A stretch of DNA of 64,000 bases from Adineta vaga (GCA_021613535.1 CP075492.1:4154001-4218000), one strand, 5' to 3'. Positions 3,909 through 29,893 are shown, counted from the stretch's first letter. The notes: generated from the sequence alone by a model not told the origin. Program-made: numbers and translations.

Positions 3909-5067
3909 ATGATAGCAAGTAGAATCCTGAAAAAATTTATTTTCTTCGTTGTGATTGCAGCTGTTGCTGTCCCATTACGATATGGCTCAACAAATCCTAA
4001 ATATGTTTTACTACGGTTAATACATTCGGCACTAACATTAAAAAATTGCTTTGTTGCTGATCAAAATCGACCAACACTCAGTCCAGCTTATCGTGCTTTT
4101 GAAGAAATATTAAAGTCCACTAAAGAACCGCCTCATGATCCATTAGCAGATACATTGACAACGATTCAACAACAACGTGCAAGTTTTCCATTTGTTGATA
4201 TAATTCCTAAACCGGGTCAATGTCAAATTACAAAGGAAATATTTATACATGGTGGACACAACGTAGATGCGTATTGGGTTGATCATCGTCAGAAACATTC
4301 ACAGAAAAGATCCGATAAAATCATACTCTATTTTCATGGCGGAAGCTATACATTAGGAGATATTCATTGTAAGTTATTCTATATCGTTACAGATATAAGT
4401 GATACATTCCGACATTTTGATAGCTTATAGTGGATCTGAATGTCATTATTCTAAACTATTCAATATGACTATTCTTCATTTGGAATATCGTCTTATTCCT
4501 GAGCACCCTGTGCCTTCTGCTGTTGAAGATGCAGTAGCTATCTATCGTGCACTTCTTGCTCAGGGCATTGAACCATCTCAAATCTTTATTATGGGTGATT
4601 CAGCTGGAGGTGGGCTCGCTCTCTTAACAATTCAGTATTTGATTACTCATCAATTGTCTGTTCCACATGGTGTTGTTGTCCTAGCACCATGGACTGATCT
4701 TTCATTATCTGGTGAAAGTTATACACGAAATCGTCATACGGATGCTATGTTCAATTCAGACCGCACAAAATGGGAAGTTAAAGTGGTCGTGGATACTTAT
4801 GCATCGAAATTACCACCAAACGATCCAATATTTAGTCCACTTTTTGGTTCATTCAAAGGATTTCCACCAATGTATGTGAATGTTGGTACAGCTGACACAC
4901 TAGAAGATGATGCAAGAGGAGTCGTCAAAAAAGCACAAGAAGCAGGCGTTAGTGTTACATTCGAAGCAGGTTTACATCTGATGCATGTTTATCCAGCATT
5001 CTTTGATTACTTTCCTGAAGCACGTCAGACTCTTGATAATATAAACAAATGGATTCATTCAATTTAA
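3909..5067 (+). CDS. Alpha/beta hydrolase, HSL (Abhydrolase_3) family esterase with N-terminal hydrophobic anchor (intron 4369-4423)
   Basis: YFHGGSY oxyanion motif, LEYRL.PEHP.P, GDSAGG nucleophile elbow, downstream Asp and His (LMHVY). Confidence 0.9.
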
Positions 5068-5923
5068 TCACTGGTTATACGAAACCCAACGATATTATAA
5101 TATTCCTAAAACTAAATTCATCTAACTATATTGTGTTATCTTTTCGAAAATATACTTTCCCACATATAGTTTCTTAAAAATCGTATGAATCGTACACATT
5201 CATAATTATCTATATTCGATTATAAAAGAAAAAAATTGACAATTTATTTCGTCAAACATTATTCAAGTAGAATAACAAACGATGAAACAACGTCTTGATT
5301 TCTTGTGATAATAGTAAATCTGTTTTTCTATTTCTATCTTAGATTATGGAAATAGTATGATCATACCGTTTTTGATTTGCTGACAAAAGTATCGATTACA
5401 AACGAAAGCTTTTTTTAGTCATCTTTTTCTTAGATAGAAACAAAGATATAATTCATAGGAAAATTTGTTTATAAGATGAAATTCTAATAATTATCAATCA
5501 GAATTACAAAGGCATCGTCATTCGTTTCATATATGATTAAGAAAATGTTATTTCTTCTACAGTTACTGTTTTCTTTCGATATTTCAAACAAGTATGAAAT
5601 TACCTTTTTTTTCTCCTTTTTCTGCTCAAACAGGTGACGTCATATCTTGCGTAAGTCTTATGTAAATCTCAAGAACTAGCAAAGTTAAGCAGAACATTAA
5701 TTAAATCCGCCATACTTTTCTTTTCGAACTTATAAATTCTCCACGCAACTGCTTTCGTTGTTAGATTATGTTTTGTGAGACATTACTCGGTAAACATTAT
5801 TTTTATTTTCGCTTGTCTTTCTTTTTTAAATAATGAAAGAGAACGATTATTGTCTATTCTTCTGACTTGTGAATACCTCTGAAAAATTTCTGTTAACAAT
5901 TTTATTCTAGATAGCTACTGATT

Positions 5924-8072
5924 ATGGCTAACACAGACGTTTTACCAGCGATACCAACTTCATTCATTTATGAAGCTTTGGTCGAACAAGTTCAAGCGAT
6001 ACAAAATCAAGCGATAGAATTTGAAAATATTCTTGCTGAACGATGGCAAAATAATAAAGATATGCGAAAAGAAGTCAAATGTCATTCATACACTTTTATC
6101 GATCCATATGGAAATGAAATGATCGAAGAACATATGGATCACGAAGCAACGAATAGTATCGTTCGAAAATTGAAGAAAAATTATGTACCAAAATATTTGA
6201 AAAATTGGATTCAAATTGGTATATTGAATGCAAATGGTTTATCTGCTCTCAATGATGGTGATCTGAAATCAACAGTATCAAATTATGTTGATGATTGTCA
6301 ATTTGTTGCCTTTGGAGAAATTAAAGTTTGGCTTGGACGTTATGACACTCTCTCACCACAGAAAATCGATGTTAAAGTTCGTCTAACAGATAATTTAGAA
6401 AAAATCCTATTTCGAATTAAAGAACAACATCAATTTACCAATATTGAATTACGATTAGGTGATATAGGTCAAACAGCTGTGCCAACTATAGAAAATTGGA
6501 ATGCTGGTGCAGCACTCAAATCAGAAGACACAATTTTATCTCGTCGAGTATATCAAGATAACTATATTATCATGGCTAAAATCATACAAGAAGCCAATGT
6601 AATTATCTTGTATATTTTTGAAAAAAAATTTCTTCTTCTTTGTATTAATCTAATCGTAGGCATCGAATTCAGATACTGCTTTTGATTTGTTTATTCAAAC
6701 TCTAACTGGGAAACAAGTTCAACTAATTGTTAGTCCTACAACAGATATAACGATGGTAAAAGAATTGATACAAACAAGGGAAGGTATTCCTCCAGATCAA
6801 CAACGTTTCATATATGCTGGCAAACAATTGGAGGATGATAGAAAATTATCAGACTATCATATTCCAAATGGAGCGGTCATTCATCTTGTGCTTCGTTTAC
6901 GAGGTGGAATGTATCATTTTACCAGTGGTCGACAAGATTTCAGTCAACTACCTAATGGATGTGGTAATGCTATTCAAAATGTTCTTACATTTGAAACGAA
7001 AGATATTGATGATATTCATCAATTATCATCGACTGATTTGCAAGAATTTGTCATGCAAGCAAATCTTCTACTAACATCTTTACATCGCAAAACGAAAGAG
7101 ATTTATATAGCACGTAATCTTCCAGATTTGAAAGCTATGATCTTACCAACACCTGTCGATGATGCAGAAGACAGTGAAGGTGAAGATGATGATGATGAGA
7201 ATACTTCTAATGATCAATGACTATTATTATCACAAAAACAACTTCGAGTCTATCGATTATTAGAACGTCACATCCTCAAAGATCTACTCATCAAAGAAGA
7301 ACAACTAAGACTCTCTCCACAAACACAACAACTATTATCATCCATTCAAGATCGAACCGATATTGATTGGATGGACGTCATTGCTGATCTACAAACCAAT
7401 TTGATCAAAGAAGCTATTGGTCAAGATGCAAATGATCAAGAAATTCAACATGGTTTAAATATTTTGAGAAGTGCTCATCAAATCTATTCAAATGATGATG
7501 AATTTCATGATCTTTCTCTCTATGTTCGACATAATCGTGCACGACAAGGTCATCTCGAAGTTGGTGATCCATCACCTGATGTTCAACTACTGAATATGGA
7601 TCAACAATTTGTATCATTATTATCTCATTGTCATTCTCCTCATCGACCATTGTTAATCATTGCTGGCTCATATACATGACCTCCATTTCGTGGTGCTGTA
7701 CCACAACTTCATCAACTCATGGATATGTACAAAGATCGTGTTGATATGGTGACTGTCTATATCGAAGAAGCACATGCATCAGATGAATGGCCAATTGGCA
7801 GTCGAATCTGTTATGTTCAACCGAAAAGTGATGCTGATCGATTGAAGATTGCTACAGATTTCATCAAAGCAACCGATTATCGAATACCAATGTTGATCGA
7901 TCCAGTATCACTTGGTAATCCATTTAGTAAAGAATATAATCCATGGCCAATTCGATTTTATGTAGTGGATGGAATGAAACGATTGAGTTATATAGGTGCA
8001 CCGATTGAAGGATCATATCCATTGGAATTAATCAGAAATGCATTGGATGAAGCGATTCAACAATGTCAATAG
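5924..8072 (+). CDS. Ubiquitin-domain / iodothyronine-deiodinase-like selenoprotein fusion, copy A (exons 5924-6598, 6660-8072; in-frame TGA at 7218-7220 and 7677-7679; 695 aa if both are read through)
   Basis: After the phase-0 intron 6599-6659, ORFs 6687, 7371 and 7719 share one frame and are separated only by single TGA codons. Ubiquitin domain ends HLVLRLRGG. Deiodinase motifs [14 protein letters not shown] and [17 protein letters not shown] in the 3' UTR. Confidence 0.85.
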
Positions 8073-8135
8073 AGGGTGATTGTGTGATAGATATCGATGA
8101 TGATGATGATAAAATTGTGATACGTAAAACAATTA

Positions 8136-8186
8136 ATGATATTTTTCGTTGAAAGTATATAGCTAATATACAGACGATAAATTGAT
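8136..8186 (+). promoter_or_regulatory. Type II SECIS element, copy A
   Basis: AUGAU-AUUUUUCGUU-G-AAA-GUAUAU-AGCUA-AUAUAC-A-GACGAUAAAU-UGAU: UGAN/NGAN core, 10-bp helix II, unpaired AAA and apical mini-stem, about 65 nt after the stop codon. Confidence 0.9.
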
Positions 8187-9285
8187 CCAGCTCGTGTTTG
8201 CTTGTTACAATGTTATACATCATCGTTTTCGTTTTACTTTATTTAAGAATTATGAATAAAATTTATTTTCCTTTCCTATTTGAAAAGATCAAAATAATAA
8301 ACATATAGTACATGTGTAAAATTTCAAAATGTGATTCAGTTTGTGTCATTCGCACTAATTTAGTACAATAGGTAACTTGAAAAACAGTTATTGAAGTCAA
8401 TAATTTAATGCCGTAAAAATAATTATGGTTAGTTTAATCTTAAAAGTCTACTACTACAGTGATTTCATAATTCATATATTCCAAATACTCACATTGAGAA
8501 GCAAATTTCCAACGAAACAAGTAAACTTGTTTTTCTTCTTTTCATCACTTCTTCTGTATGTTATTCTACCAGCTACCTTAAAAAAACAAGCGATGTTTAA
8601 AATGTGCAGAATAGATTTGTACACATCGCAACTGAGTTTTAACTATTCGAAAAGAAAAAGAAGAACGAAAGAATCCATCGACATATAAAATGTTGTGTCT
8701 ACTCTGTAATGAAACAAAATAACAAAAAAACACTGAAAGTAAGTAATGTTTAATTTTTTTTTCTTTTGCTGCAGAACTTTTAATAGACTATTCCTCCAGA
8801 CAAGCGATTCCTTTCGCGGAAAGATGTAAATGATCTGAGCAATCGACTAAAATGTGTAGGAAACTGACTTCATTGAAGTTTGAAATATACAGACATATGA
8901 AGAACCTTCTCCAATTTATGATAATTAGGATGGAACCAGTTCATCCTTACCTTGCACATCAGCAGAGATGATCTTGAAAACATGATTTTTATATTTACTC
9001 GGTCTTGACATCACATACCTTTAAAAGACTTCTGAAAAAATTTGTGGGATTGACCGCACTCTTTTCTTTGCAAAAATGCAACTGATCGTGCATTTTGAGA
9101 TAGTTTATAAATTTTCTGATATCGAGGAGAAACAGGCGGATCTACCATTTTCCCGAATTTTACACAGTTTTCTCTTTTTCATTGATTCATGTTGATGAGT
9201 AAATCTATCGCTTTCTAAAATGACCCCTCTCTTTTGTAGAAGATCTATTCTACTTTATACATTCGAAAAACTTTTGAACACGAAC

Positions 9286-11183
9286 ATGGCAACAGGTGGA
9301 AGTATTAATGTACAGCAACGTGTGCGCGTATCAGATATAGCTAAGGAGCCACAAAAAATGCTTATGCCAATACGTGGCTATGAGAAAATGCCGTTAGTAT
9401 CGTTGGAAGAAGCGGTAGCACCGCTTGTTTCTATATTACCTGAAGTTCAAGACTACGTCTATGTAGCGAAACAACGATGTGAGGACGAACCGGCTGATGG
9501 TTTAACAAAAGATGAATCAGCATCAATCATGTTGTATTCTATGGAATGGGAACCACACGAAGAATGTTTGTATTTTAGTTTAAATGCAACTCTTCGTGCT
9601 GAGGATCGACGAAAACTGAAACCATGGTTCTTGTATTTGAAGTTGGTCCTCACAGCATTGGAGAAATTACCCTCGAAGCAACGGGTTATTTTTCGTGGAG
9701 TAAATATAGATTTAAGCAACATGTACACAAAAGGAAAAACATTTATTTGGTGGGGATTTTCTTCATGCACAACATCACTAGAAGTGCTCGAAAATGAACA
9801 ATTTCTGGCTAAAGCTGGTGAAAGAACATTGTTTACTATTCATTGCGATAGTGGAAAAGATATTAGCCGTCACTCTTATTACGCATCAGAAAAAGAGATC
9901 CTTTTGCTCGCTGCTCGACAATTTACTGTAGAATCTTGTCTTCGACCAGCACCTGGACTTCATATGGTTCAAATCCAAGAAACTCGATCACCAATTACTC
10001 TTTTACCGCAGGCTACTAATGAAGCTGATAAAATTAAGCTACCATCAAGTAAGAGAAAAGTATTTTTATTATTTGATACCTTCAATACCGTGAAAAAAAT
10101 AGTATTTAGAGAAAATTCTAGACAGATTTGAAGAGATATTGTAAAGTCCTTTGTGTTAGAATTGTAAAAAATAGGTCTTATTTGAATTATTTTTAATTAC
10201 TATTGATAGGTTCAGAAGTTAACAAAATACAAGCACCAGTTCATTTTGCAGGTCCATCAAAGCCGACGAACGAAACCAAATATACAAAACCGAGTATGTT
10301 AGAATTGAAATACTAATAATAATACTAACATTTGATGAATAATTTTCATAATTATGTTTATCTAAACGAATCGCATTACATTGAGTATTCTAAGAGAAAT
10401 ATAAAAGACGTACCATGAAAATGACATAAATGATTTTCAACAAAGAGTTTATGTGATTTCGGTTATTCCCTATTCTCTAGTAATAATTAACTGACTTCTT
10501 CACTAGTTTCAGTACATAGAAGGAATAAATCTGCAACATACTATCATGTGAATATTTAAATAGATTATACTATCTACTTCATATATTTCTTTTTGAAAAA
10601 CATATTATTTAATCACTTTCGGACTATATGGAAAGGACGTCTGGCAAGAAAGCAACGAAATGTAAAGACATATTTTTAGATTTTCGTTGACGTAATTTCA
10701 TACATACATTTAATAAAAATGATTCAATGATTTAATTTTCAATGACTAAGTAAACATTAAGACTACTCTTTGTAACCTTATTAATAGGGCTCGATAATGT
10801 GCTACATGGTATCAAGGTCGTTATTTTACTATCCGTTGTGAAACTTAAACCATCTAGATATATTATGTACTGTAGCAATTAAACTAAAAATAGATTAGAA
10901 TATTGCATTGCTGCGAACGAAAGTTTACTACTTACATAATTCAGTAATTCTTCCACAGAATCACTTAAGATACCTACTGATCCCCAGTCGAACTGCACTG
11001 ATGCATGTCAAATAGACTATATTAGAGACAAAAAATATTTTAATAAATTTTTAATTATTTTATATTTGTACTTTCTATTTAGAAAAACAAGAATTTGCTG
11101 AACCTAATGCCTTTAAAAAGCTCCGTAAAAATCGTTTATATTACATTGGATCATTTTCCATCAAAGCAGCCTGTGTCATCTAA
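9286..11183 (+). CDS. Mono-ADP-ribosyltransferase, R-S-E (ARTC) class; exon 9286-10048 firm, downstream exons 10210-10293 and 11083-11183 tentative
   Basis: VIFRGV (Arg), WWGFSSCT (S-x-S/T) and SEKEILL (E-x-E) catalytic motifs. Phase-compatible GT-AG junctions continue the frame. Confidence 0.8.
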
Positions 11184-27665: not shown

Positions 27666-27714
27666 ATCAGTTTTTTGTCTGTACATTCTATATACTTTCA
27701 ACAAAAAACATCAT
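27666..27714 (-). promoter_or_regulatory. Type II SECIS element, copy B
   Basis: Minus strand AUGAU-GUUUUUUGUU-G-AAA-GUAUAU-AGA-AUGUAC-A-GACAAAAAAC-UGAU. Same fold as copy A with compensatory changes. Confidence 0.9.
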
Positions 27715-27745
27715 TTTACTTCTTTACATATCACAATCACTCTCT

Positions 27746-29893
27746 TTATTCACATTGCTGAATCGCCTCATCCAATGCATTTTTGATTAATTCTAATGGA
27801 TATGATCCTTGAATTGGTGTAGCTATATAACTCAATCGTTTCATTCGATCAACAACATAAAATCGAATTGGCCATGGATTATATTCTTTACTAAATGGAT
27901 TACCAAGTGATACTGGATCGATCAACATTGGTATTCGATAATCGGTTGCTTTGATGAAATCTGTAGCAATCTTCAATCGATCAGTATCACATTTGGGTTG
28001 AACATAACATATTCGACTACCGATTGGCCATTCATCAGATGCATGTGCTTCTTCGATATAGACAGTCACCATATCAACACGATCTTTGTACATATCCATG
28101 AGTTGATGAAGTTGTGGTACAGCACCACGAAATGGAGGTCATGTATATGAGCCAGCAATGATTAACAATGGTCGATGAGGAGAATGACAATGTGATAATA
28201 ATGATACAAATTGTTGATCCATATTCAGTAGTTGCACATCAGGTGATGGATCACCAACTTCGAGATGACCTTGTCGTGCACGATTATGTCGAACATAGAG
28301 AGAAAGATCATGAAATTCATCATCATTTGAATAGATTTGATGAGCACTTCTCAAAATATTTAAACCATGTTGAATTTCTTGATCAGTTGCATCTTGACCA
28401 ATAGCTTCTTTGATTAGATTTGTTTGAAGATCAGCAATAATATCCATCCAATCAATATCAGTTCGATCTTGAATAGATGCAAGAAGTTGTTGTATTTGTG
28501 GAGATAACCGTAATTGTTCTTCTTTGATAAGTAAATTTTTGAGGATGTCACGTTCTAATAATCGATAGACTCGAAGTTGTTTTTGTGTTGATAAAAGTCA
28601 TTGACCATTAGAAGTATTCTCATCATCATCATCTTCACCTTCGCTGTCTTCTGCATCATCGACAGGGGTTGGTAAGATCATAGCTTTCAAATTTGGAATA
28701 TCATTAGGAATATAAAATGCAGCGATTTCATTATATAAAGTTGAAAGAATAGTTTGTCCTTGCACAATAGTATCTTGTAATTCGAATGGTGATAATTGTT
28801 GACTACTATTTTTACAATTCAATTGAAATGCAAGTACTTTTTTAACAGCATCAACACTGGTAGCAGGAAACTCTCGAAAATCTTGTCGACCACTGGTAAA
28901 ATGATACATTCCGCCTCGTAATCGTAATACTAAATGTATTGTGCTTTCTTTTTTTATATTGTAGTCACCAAGAGTTCTGCCATCTTCTAATTGCGTTCCA
29001 TTGAATATTATACGTTGTTGATCAACACAAATACCTTCCACTTCTTCAATTAATTCTTTCACGCTTGGTACCTCCATTTGGCGGTTTACTTCAATGGTAA
29101 TTGTTTTTCCAGTGAGAGTTTTCACAAATAACTGGTAGCTCTCGTGAACATGAGGATCAGTCTATATAAAAGAAGCGAAATAAAATTAGATTAGATTATT
29201 AAGATATAAATCTTAGGTTACTTTTTTATTGTAAACTTTTGCCAATAGAACACAATTTTGTAGATAAACCTGACTTGACATGACTGTATCTTCACATTTT
29301 AATAATGTGCCTTCAGTCCAGTTTGTTGCATTTGGTGTTGCATTTTGTTCGATAGTCGATGATTTCAGCTGAATATCGGTAAACCGTCTTTGTTCTTTTA
29401 TCCTCTGTTGAATCTTTTCCATATTATCTGTTAATAATATATTAATAGTAATTTTTCGTGACAAAAATGATTCATGAGTTCCAATCCATACAGTTACTTC
29501 ACCATATGAAACAAATTGCTGGTTCGTTGTGTAGTTGGAAACAGATGATTTTAAATCACCTTCGTTCAATGGTACAATACTATTTTCATTTAAAATACCG
29601 ATCCGTATCCATGGTTGTAAATATTTCGGAACATAGTCTTTTTTATATTTTTTGATTATTTTCGTGATTGGTTCATGATCCATGTATTTATTCTTCATCA
29701 GATTTCCATATGGATCAATAAATGTTAATAAACGTGATTTTAATTCATTTTGTAGTCTTTTATCTGTTTGCCATTGATTATTAAGACGAGTTTCCATTTC
29801 AAGCATTTCATTTTGAATTGTTTGAACTTGAGAAACTAAATCTTCATAAATAAACGATGTTGCTGTCGGTATAACAACGGCAGCAGTCGCCAT
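27746..29893 (-). CDS. Ubiquitin-domain / deiodinase-like selenoprotein fusion, copy B (exons 29893-29222, 29161-27746; in-frame TGA at 28600-28598 and 28141-28139; 695 aa)
   Basis: Same architecture, intron position and UGA codon numbers (412, 565) as copy A, with its own SECIS. Confidence 0.85.

Follow-up and report, generated by a model that had tools for sequence, protein, structure and literature searches.

The ubiquitin-deiodinase gene described here, which lies in a 64,000-nt stretch of Adineta vaga DNA (in the following referred to as the window), carries an in-frame TGA at 7218–7220, and comparison with its relatives suggests, at a probability of about 0.78, that this codon is a conserved programmed leaky stop giving a short product of 411 aa and a rarer long fusion. 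The same arrangement was found in 15 further independent sequences, which is far beyond chance. The stop is conserved, the sequence behind it has coding character, sense codons replace it in some copies, its context is favorable and, according to assembled contigs, it is present in the mature mRNA; the combination of conserved stop, coding extension, sense replacements and matching contexts corresponds to the comparative signature of programmed readthrough. Many efficient UGA readthrough sites feature a conserved 3′ RNA structure, and the absence of such a structure from the RNAalifold analysis of 135 nt around the stop in nine sequences was counted against this reading. That readthrough actually takes place, as well as its efficiency and the residue inserted, we infer from these comparisons.

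Most ribosomes would stop at TGA 7218–7220 and release a protein composed of the N-terminal domain, the ubiquitin-like domain, the MYHFTSGR segment and the acidic tail (225 aa from exon 1 and 186 aa from exon 2). In a minority of ribosomes, a near-cognate tRNA could insert an amino acid at this position, favored by the A-rich preceding codon and the following C, CAA-YYA or CUA. These ribosomes would continue in frame over 152 further codons to the catalytic UGA, where selenocysteine (Sec) would be inserted via the 3′ SECIS, and would finally translate the remainder of the deiodinase-like domain. Two products would in this way arise from a single mRNA: a short ubiquitin-like protein and, in a lower, set proportion, a longer form in which this protein is fused to a selenoenzyme. 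The enzyme part of the fusion may be released by cleavage after LRLRGG.

The genome comprises 6 contigs (100.8 Mb); the window has a G+C content of 31%, and short introns occur. Searches were made with separate pieces of the gene (exon 1; the part of exon 2 before the TGA; 7221–7676; 7680–8069), and bdelloid rotifer assemblies were found to hold its nearest relatives. A Pfam search of the 225-aa N-terminal domain gave no family. The domain behind it combines the Pfam match with the terminal LRLRGG typical of the ubiquitin family (LRLRGG-M at 6891–6911, GG/M boundary at 6908/6909), and the downstream part shows PF00837, the GSxT-U/C-PP motif and a SECIS, i.e., all hallmarks of a deiodinase-like selenoprotein (Table 1).

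TABLE 1. Features of the gene (copy A) and of its inverted copy B; positions are counted from the first letter of the window.
Feature	Position	Strand	Evidence or remarks
Exon 1, copy A: 225-aa N-terminal domain	5924–6598	+	Open reading frame; conserved in paralogues and orthologues
Intron, 61 nt, GT..AG	6599–6659	+	Skipped by X1 RNA contig (record 1), i.e., spliced
Ubiquitin-like domain, C-terminal LRLRGG	6687–6908	+	Pfam PF00240, E = 1.6e-23
Post-ubiquitin segment: 11-residue motif (MYHFTSGR segment), ~80 aa, acidic tail (7158–7217)	6909–7217	+	
Proposed leaky stop TGA, context caa TGA cta tta	7218–7220	+	End position of the short paralogues
Proposed readthrough extension, first part, up to GSYT	7221–7676	+	Open frame, purifying selection, homologues
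Catalytic Sec-TGA in GSYT-U-PPFRG	7677–7679	+	Conserved in copy B, L029, L030, L044 and L050
C-terminal deiodinase-like part with final TAG (8070–8072)	7680–8072	+	Pfam PF00837, E = 1.1e-12 (on 7680–8069)
SECIS, form 2: AUGA, 10-bp helix II, GAAAG, mini-stem, UGAU	8136–8186	+	Pattern and covariation
Copy B, inverted paralogue, same layout	27666–29893	−	ATG 29893–29891; proposed leaky TGA 28600–28598
Copy B, continued		−	Sec-TGA 28141–28139; TAA 27748–27746; SECIS 27666–27714

The first part of the extension consists of a variable linker of six codons, the conserved stretch QLRVYRLLE, a helical region and the start of a thioredoxin fold, and its alignment to the paralogue on C2 begins at residue 14. 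The catalytic Sec is replaced by Cys in the distant homologues P0109 and P0135. The SECIS at 8136–8186 is real: in six homologous elements, 93.7% of the cells are paired, with compensatory changes at five pairs, versus 44–55% in slid controls. An Rfam search at gathering and permissive thresholds gave no SECIS match. The genome also contains a tRNA-Sec gene (66.7 bits), and both components serve the catalytic UGA at 7677 in any case.

Identity between copies A and B is about 62% as far as 7122 and about 95% over 7123–8082 (copy B 27746–28695, minus strand). This jump, located 95 nt upstream of the proposed leaky stop, suggests that the 3′ part underwent gene conversion. Within the 95% tract, region 7263–7370 is more diverged (pS 0.42 versus about 0.12 in the flanks), and the overall pattern resembles mosaic gene conversion between two inverted paralogues separated by 20 kb. 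A fragment about 19 kb before the window (L028:3090–3311; G000:C3:4134589–4134810), which is probably the relic of a third copy, covers the last ~20 codons and the SECIS at ~70% identity; the AUGA and GAAAG motifs are preserved, but helix II is disrupted in part and UGAU reads GGAU. Among the neighboring ORFs, the first pair (3909–5067) contains HGGS and GDSAGG motifs reminiscent of alpha/beta-hydrolase esterases, and a 303-aa ORF (9220–10131) may resemble ADP-ribosyltransferase-like proteins.

Five paralogues in the genome share the N-terminal domain, the ubiquitin-like domain, the MYHFTSGR segment and the acidic tail. Each of them stops with TAA exactly at the homologous position and continues into an AT-rich UTR without any enzyme; among these family members, a TGA-C with a deiodinase-like frame behind it is found in A and B only. 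The five TAA-ending paralogues indicate that the short form is a working unit, and they bear out the original prediction that termination gives a 411-aa ubiquitin-like protein.

The 11-residue motif following the ubiquitin-like domain is common to the N-termini of the deiodinase-like paralogues on C2 and C5, where it appears as H-x-TSGR-xx-F, and to distant continuous ubiquitin-deiodinase fusions. The C2 paralogue (L013; G000:C2:6410737–6414129, minus strand) is a stand-alone deiodinase-like selenoprotein that starts with MGMAHVTSGR, is devoid of a ubiquitin-like domain and has a 57-nt intron about five codons past the point homologous to the proposed leaky stop. The C5 paralogue (L014; G000:C5:8494907–8498068), likewise a stand-alone deiodinase-like selenoprotein, has an N-terminus of its own with the same TSGR motif, and at least six more deiodinase-like loci are present elsewhere in the genome. 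In the distant homologues P0065, P0109 and P0135, ubiquitin, LRLRGG-M-x-x-x-TSGR, a linker or ZZ finger and the deiodinase domain form one continuous ORF (for P0109 and P0135, the domains ubiquitin, ZZ and T4_deiodinase were assigned). Consequently, the fusion looks ancestral, and the bdelloid stop appears to interrupt it.

LRLRGG, compared over 6891–6935 of the window, is retained in the five TAA paralogues and in all other stop-bearing copies, and is lost in both orthologues with a sense codon at the site (L029, LIVRDE; L030, RLQSE) and in one TGA orthologue (L036, RRLTAA). Cleavage after GG may be linked to the two-product design, the correlation being imperfect: a strict coupling of GG loss to stop loss, which fits L029 and L030, was rejected as it fails for L036.

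The codon at the site was compared in 17 copies, i.e., the two copies of the window and 15 independent orthologous sequences from bdelloid assemblies and metagenomes (Table 2). The search with 7221–7676 as query gave 563 homologues at E ≤ 0.001, the majority of which stop at the Sec codon; the DNA of the closest homologues was retrieved, and more sequences were added by a pattern scan of metagenome contigs. A copy from Rotaria sp. ‘Silwood-2’ (L033/L034; PMC7943196 for the species name) was left out as decayed, with a frameshift upstream and an extra TAA; being located in a frameshifted copy, this TAA was dropped as a problem for readthrough.

TABLE 2. Sequence at the site in the 17 copies.
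Copy	Sequence
A	caa TGA cta tta
B	caa TGA ctt tta
L031, L035	caa TGA caa tcc
L032	caa TGA caa aca
L036	cag TGA caa tta
L040	cac TGA ccc tta
L043, L050	gaa TGA caa tca
L047	caa TGA cta tca
L038	caa TAG caa tta
L044	gaa TAG caa tta
L046	caa TAG caa cta
L045	gaa TAA caa tta
L048	caa TAA caa tta
L029	gaa CGA caa cta
L030	gat AGC caa tca

A stop is present in 15 of the 17 copies (TGA in ten, TAG in three, TAA in two), and CGA and AGC occur once each. The base after the stop is C in all 15 cases, and AA stands just before it in 13. Readthrough contexts have been classified as type I (UAG-CAR-YYA) and type II (UGA-CUA) (PMC3159437). The full CAA-UUA or CAA-CUA, i.e., the tobamovirus-type CAA-YUA, follows in five of five TAG or TAA copies; UGA-CUA is found in copy A and L047, and the sequences after TGA are not uniform, with CAA-UCC, CAA-ACA, CCC-UUA and CUU-UUA among those found, which was counted against the readthrough reading. 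The tighter stops TAA and TAG are always combined with the full context, and UGA tolerates looser ones. The TGA-CTA of copy A and the TGA-CTT of copy B (minus strand) had been named correctly in the original prediction.

Several of these orthologues are well preserved on both sides of the site. In L029 (CGA) and L030 (AGC), an uninterrupted ORF connects the ubiquitin-like domain with the Sec codon; L044 and L050 show no defect as far as the Sec-TGA; in L048 (TAA), the gene is intact before the stop and 79 codons are conserved after it; and L036 and L038 show the whole architecture including the SECIS. The L038 contig contains three identical tandem units and a fourth, decayed one that also has TAG. 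In the tandem array with the TAG-bearing orthologue (L039; ENA ERZ25067825 contig, 14026 nt), each of the four ~3.47-kb units consists of a PA_decarbox gene and a ubiquitin-deiodinase gene; the three identical units may partly be a product of contig assembly. In the tree of the region, TGA is found in the most divergent sequence, the outgroup, and across most clades; the two TAA sequences are sisters, CGA is nested among TGA sequences and AGC is sister to a TGA sequence. Given its presence in the most divergent sequence and most clades, TGA is probably ancestral, with several switches away from it.

This variety of codons bears on a selenium-specific explanation, put forward in the original prediction, by which the first UGA would be read mainly as Sec via the same 3′ SECIS and synthesis of the long form gated by Sec-tRNA or selenium supply. 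A eukaryotic SECIS can serve upstream in-frame UGAs wherever they are placed, e.g., in selenoprotein P; the real SECIS lies ~915 nt downstream of the first UGA, the tRNA-Sec gene is present, and TGA is the commonest and probably ancestral codon at the site. However, TAG or TAA in five intact orthologues is unreadable as Sec, and the sense replacements are Arg and Ser and in none of the 17 copies Cys (TGT or TGC). Moreover, the site is located between the acidic tail and the variable six-residue linker, outside any redox or catalytic motif, and its conserved flanks fit generic readthrough contexts. Asking whether orthologues always have TGA, any stop or Cys had been suggested as a check, and since the outcome is any stop, the conserved mechanism would be generic readthrough rather than Sec insertion. 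Reading of the first UGA mainly as Sec is consequently improbable and the selenium-specific part of the prediction unsupported: TGA 7218–7220 is not a Sec codon by the usual criteria, some Sec insertion in TGA-bearing species being possible, if not required. A combined action, in which the SECIS also acts on the first UGA, with 7218 mostly a stop or decoded by near-cognate tRNA and 7677 as Sec, so that the ratio of short to long product responds to selenium, is a tentative option of limited likelihood.

For programmed readthrough, the frame past the stop has to be translated, and the comparison of sequences supports this. All 50 codons of 7221–7370 are open and in frame without ATG, the first in-frame ATG being at 7371. 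Between copies A and B, 10 synonymous and 6 non-synonymous differences were counted in 7263–7370, corresponding to a pN/pS of 0.17 in frame versus 0.40 and 4.6 in the other frames; in 7221–7262, the pair differs at 3 positions only and is uninformative. The ten codons ending at AG 7262–7263, the acceptor of a proposed intron, gave a pN/pS of 0.26 in frame versus 0.68 and 2.66 among orthologues, four of these codons being fixed by the search pattern in the seven metagenome sequences used, and A and L040 differ over the same ten codons by 7 synonymous changes and 1 non-synonymous change. The six codons directly past the stop vary and are followed by the conserved QLRVYRLLE, whose codons change among ctt/tta/cta/ttg/ctg, cga/aga/cgt and gtc/gta/gtg/gtt. 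The extension has a single in-frame 3-nt indel, stops occur in the decayed copy only, and no conserved ATG between the stop and QLRVYRLLE was found among the orthologues. In summary, the frame past the proposed leaky stop is under purifying selection and probably translated. On this side of the stop, the original prediction held well: the TGA follows the acidic tail and precedes 50 in-frame codons without ATG, the differences between the copies are largely synonymous, translation of the stretch is borne out by the orthologues, and the proposal that recoding adds a deiodinase-like selenoenzyme is likewise supported by comparison.

The alternative that a cryptic in-frame intron (7180–7263, or another donor combined with AG 7262–7263) removes the stop could be weighed with transcripts. 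GT 7180–7181 and AG 7262–7263 do bound an in-frame 84-nt stretch, as had been predicted, the AG lies inside a conserved tta-tta-gaa, and NCBI models of other bdelloids (P0015, P0001, P0028 and P0113) skip the stop by an intron ending at the homologous AG. Assembled contigs of four public runs were placed on 5700–8500; such contigs drop rare isoforms, and RNA content is demonstrated for X1 only, by its spliced contig, the library kind of the other runs being assumed. The sole joint among the contigs in this region is 6598/6660 in X1, which corresponds to the true intron 6599–6659 and serves as positive control for splicing. X5 record 12 spans 7157–7780 straight through, with 29 differences and none at 7218–7220; X6 record 16 (7120–7322) runs unbroken over the TGA, X8 record 25 (7232–7396) is unbroken and without joint, and X1 has the same depth over 7204–7297 as in the flanks. 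The stop is present in the mature mRNA, and transcripts are continuous and unspliced over 7218–7220; a minor spliced form is possible. At window 7222–7228, the X5 and X6 contigs read TGA caa cta tca, a third variant that has the full CAA-YYA directly after the stop and differs from cta tta tta in copy A and ctt tta tca in copy B.

With no joint removing the stop in the four runs and the depth over 7180–7263 equal to the flanks, protein-level selection in the 3′ part of the supposed intron, no AG at that phase in L030, L038 and L040, and no conservation of donor positions, such an intron is very unlikely and was rejected as main route. In view of the RNA and conservation data, the stop-skipping introns of the NCBI models look like predictor artifacts. 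These four models each use a different donor, and the deiodinase part is a separate gene or omitted; the assemblies of L031, L032, L033 and L035 are GCA_905332035.1, GCA_905332175.1, GCA_905330535.1 and GCA_905332015.1. An in-frame intron of greater length, with GTAATG at 6964 as donor and AG 7263 as acceptor and thereby mimicking the intron position of the C2 paralogue, was also considered and dropped, neither a joint nor a loose end being found for it among the contigs.

Readthrough would also be dispensable if the TGA were an ordinary terminator and the deiodinase-like part arose from an internal transcript, trans-splicing or reinitiation at Met 7371 or a non-AUG codon. Bdelloids use trans-splicing and operons, a product from Met 7371 would have 233 residues, a plausible deiodinase size, and the depth in X6 rises ~13-fold downstream of ~7392, which we read as 3′ bias and which could also reflect a shorter transcript. 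Nevertheless, this explanation is highly improbable: region 7233–7370 is under purifying selection and homologous to coding sequence of paralogues and distant homologues, yet has no preceding ATG, and the Met of WMD is conserved and lies inside the domain. Furthermore, two orthologues and the distant relatives have a continuous single protein, and no spliced-leader-like loose ends were found among the contigs in 7221–7400. A decaying gene, with the stop as nonsense mutation spread between the copies by gene conversion, would fit the ~95% identical tract 7123–8082 and the truly decayed Rotaria copy with its frameshift and extra TAA, but its probability is negligible in the face of a stop that recurs in at least 13 further sequences, the most divergent among them, a downstream pN/pS of 0.07–0.2 and the expression of both copies seen in contigs.

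Viruses and insects provide well-known examples of programmed readthrough. The rotifer sequences carry the same hexanucleotides as the tobamovirus replicase (type I, UAG-CAA-UUA) and alphavirus nsP3/nsP4 (type II, UGA-CUA), and share with these viral leaky stops the CAA-YYA or CUA after and the A-rich sequence before the stop, as well as a long fusion at low ratio with an additional enzymatic domain. In contrast to the viral cases, the rotifer gene is cellular, its lineages between them use all three stop codons, a 3′ structure was not found and the extension itself needs a second recoding event, the insertion of Sec. Comparative genomics has revealed cellular readthrough genes such as kelch, headcase and hundreds more in Drosophila. 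With these, the rotifer gene has in common the conserved stop, the protein-like sequence downstream, some sense replacement and the preference for UGA-C; it differs in phylum, in an extension that comprises a whole selenoenzyme domain and in its apparently ancestral state as a continuous fusion ORF. Readthrough genes found by comparative genomics are also treated in PMC13278127.

In selenium biology, we regard SPS1-UGA of Hymenoptera, a conserved in-frame UGA with non-Sec readthrough and with Arg in its place in other insects (PMC4561486), as the nearest cellular precedent on the basis of this comparison. The rotifer site would likewise be a conserved in-frame UGA that is decoded by a non-Sec route and replaceable by Arg, in a gene family tied to selenium biology. 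SPS1-UGA is, however, a former catalytic Sec site with a conserved local stem-loop and without SECIS (PMC4561486), whereas the rotifer UGA is located in a linker, the SECIS of its mRNA still functions for another UGA, and replacement by TAG or TAA is allowed. The combination of more than one in-frame UGA and a 3′ SECIS on one mRNA, with the first UGA as bottleneck, is reminiscent of selenoprotein P. In such multi-UGA mRNAs, every UGA encodes Sec and alternates with Cys in orthologues, whereas the first rotifer site alternates with TAG, TAA, Arg and Ser. Finally, ubiquitin-fusion precursors are known from ubiquitin-ribosomal protein fusions. Like in these, LRLRGG is directly followed by Met and another protein, ubiquitin-less relatives starting with MGM.H.TSGR; the ubiquitin-like domain of the rotifer gene is, in contrast, internal, behind a 225-aa N-terminal domain, its cleavage is putative and GG is lost in three lineages.

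A full-text literature search gave no description of a ubiquitin-deiodinase fusion or of readthrough in rotifers, and no description of a cellular mRNA that needs both stop-codon readthrough and Sec insertion for its full product. Current bdelloid gene models truncate the gene or invent an intron that skips the stop, and both the fusion and the selenoprotein are mis-annotated as a result. Since one site is occupied by TGA, TAG, TAA, Arg or Ser, and the tighter stops coincide exactly with tobamovirus-like contexts, the members of the family form a natural series in which the effect of context and stop identity on readthrough can be measured in an animal. The gene also allows the action of a SECIS on an upstream non-catalytic UGA to be tested; if the SECIS did serve the first UGA, this would be a natural system for studying how ribosomes distinguish between a UGA served by a SECIS and a terminator within one and the same message.
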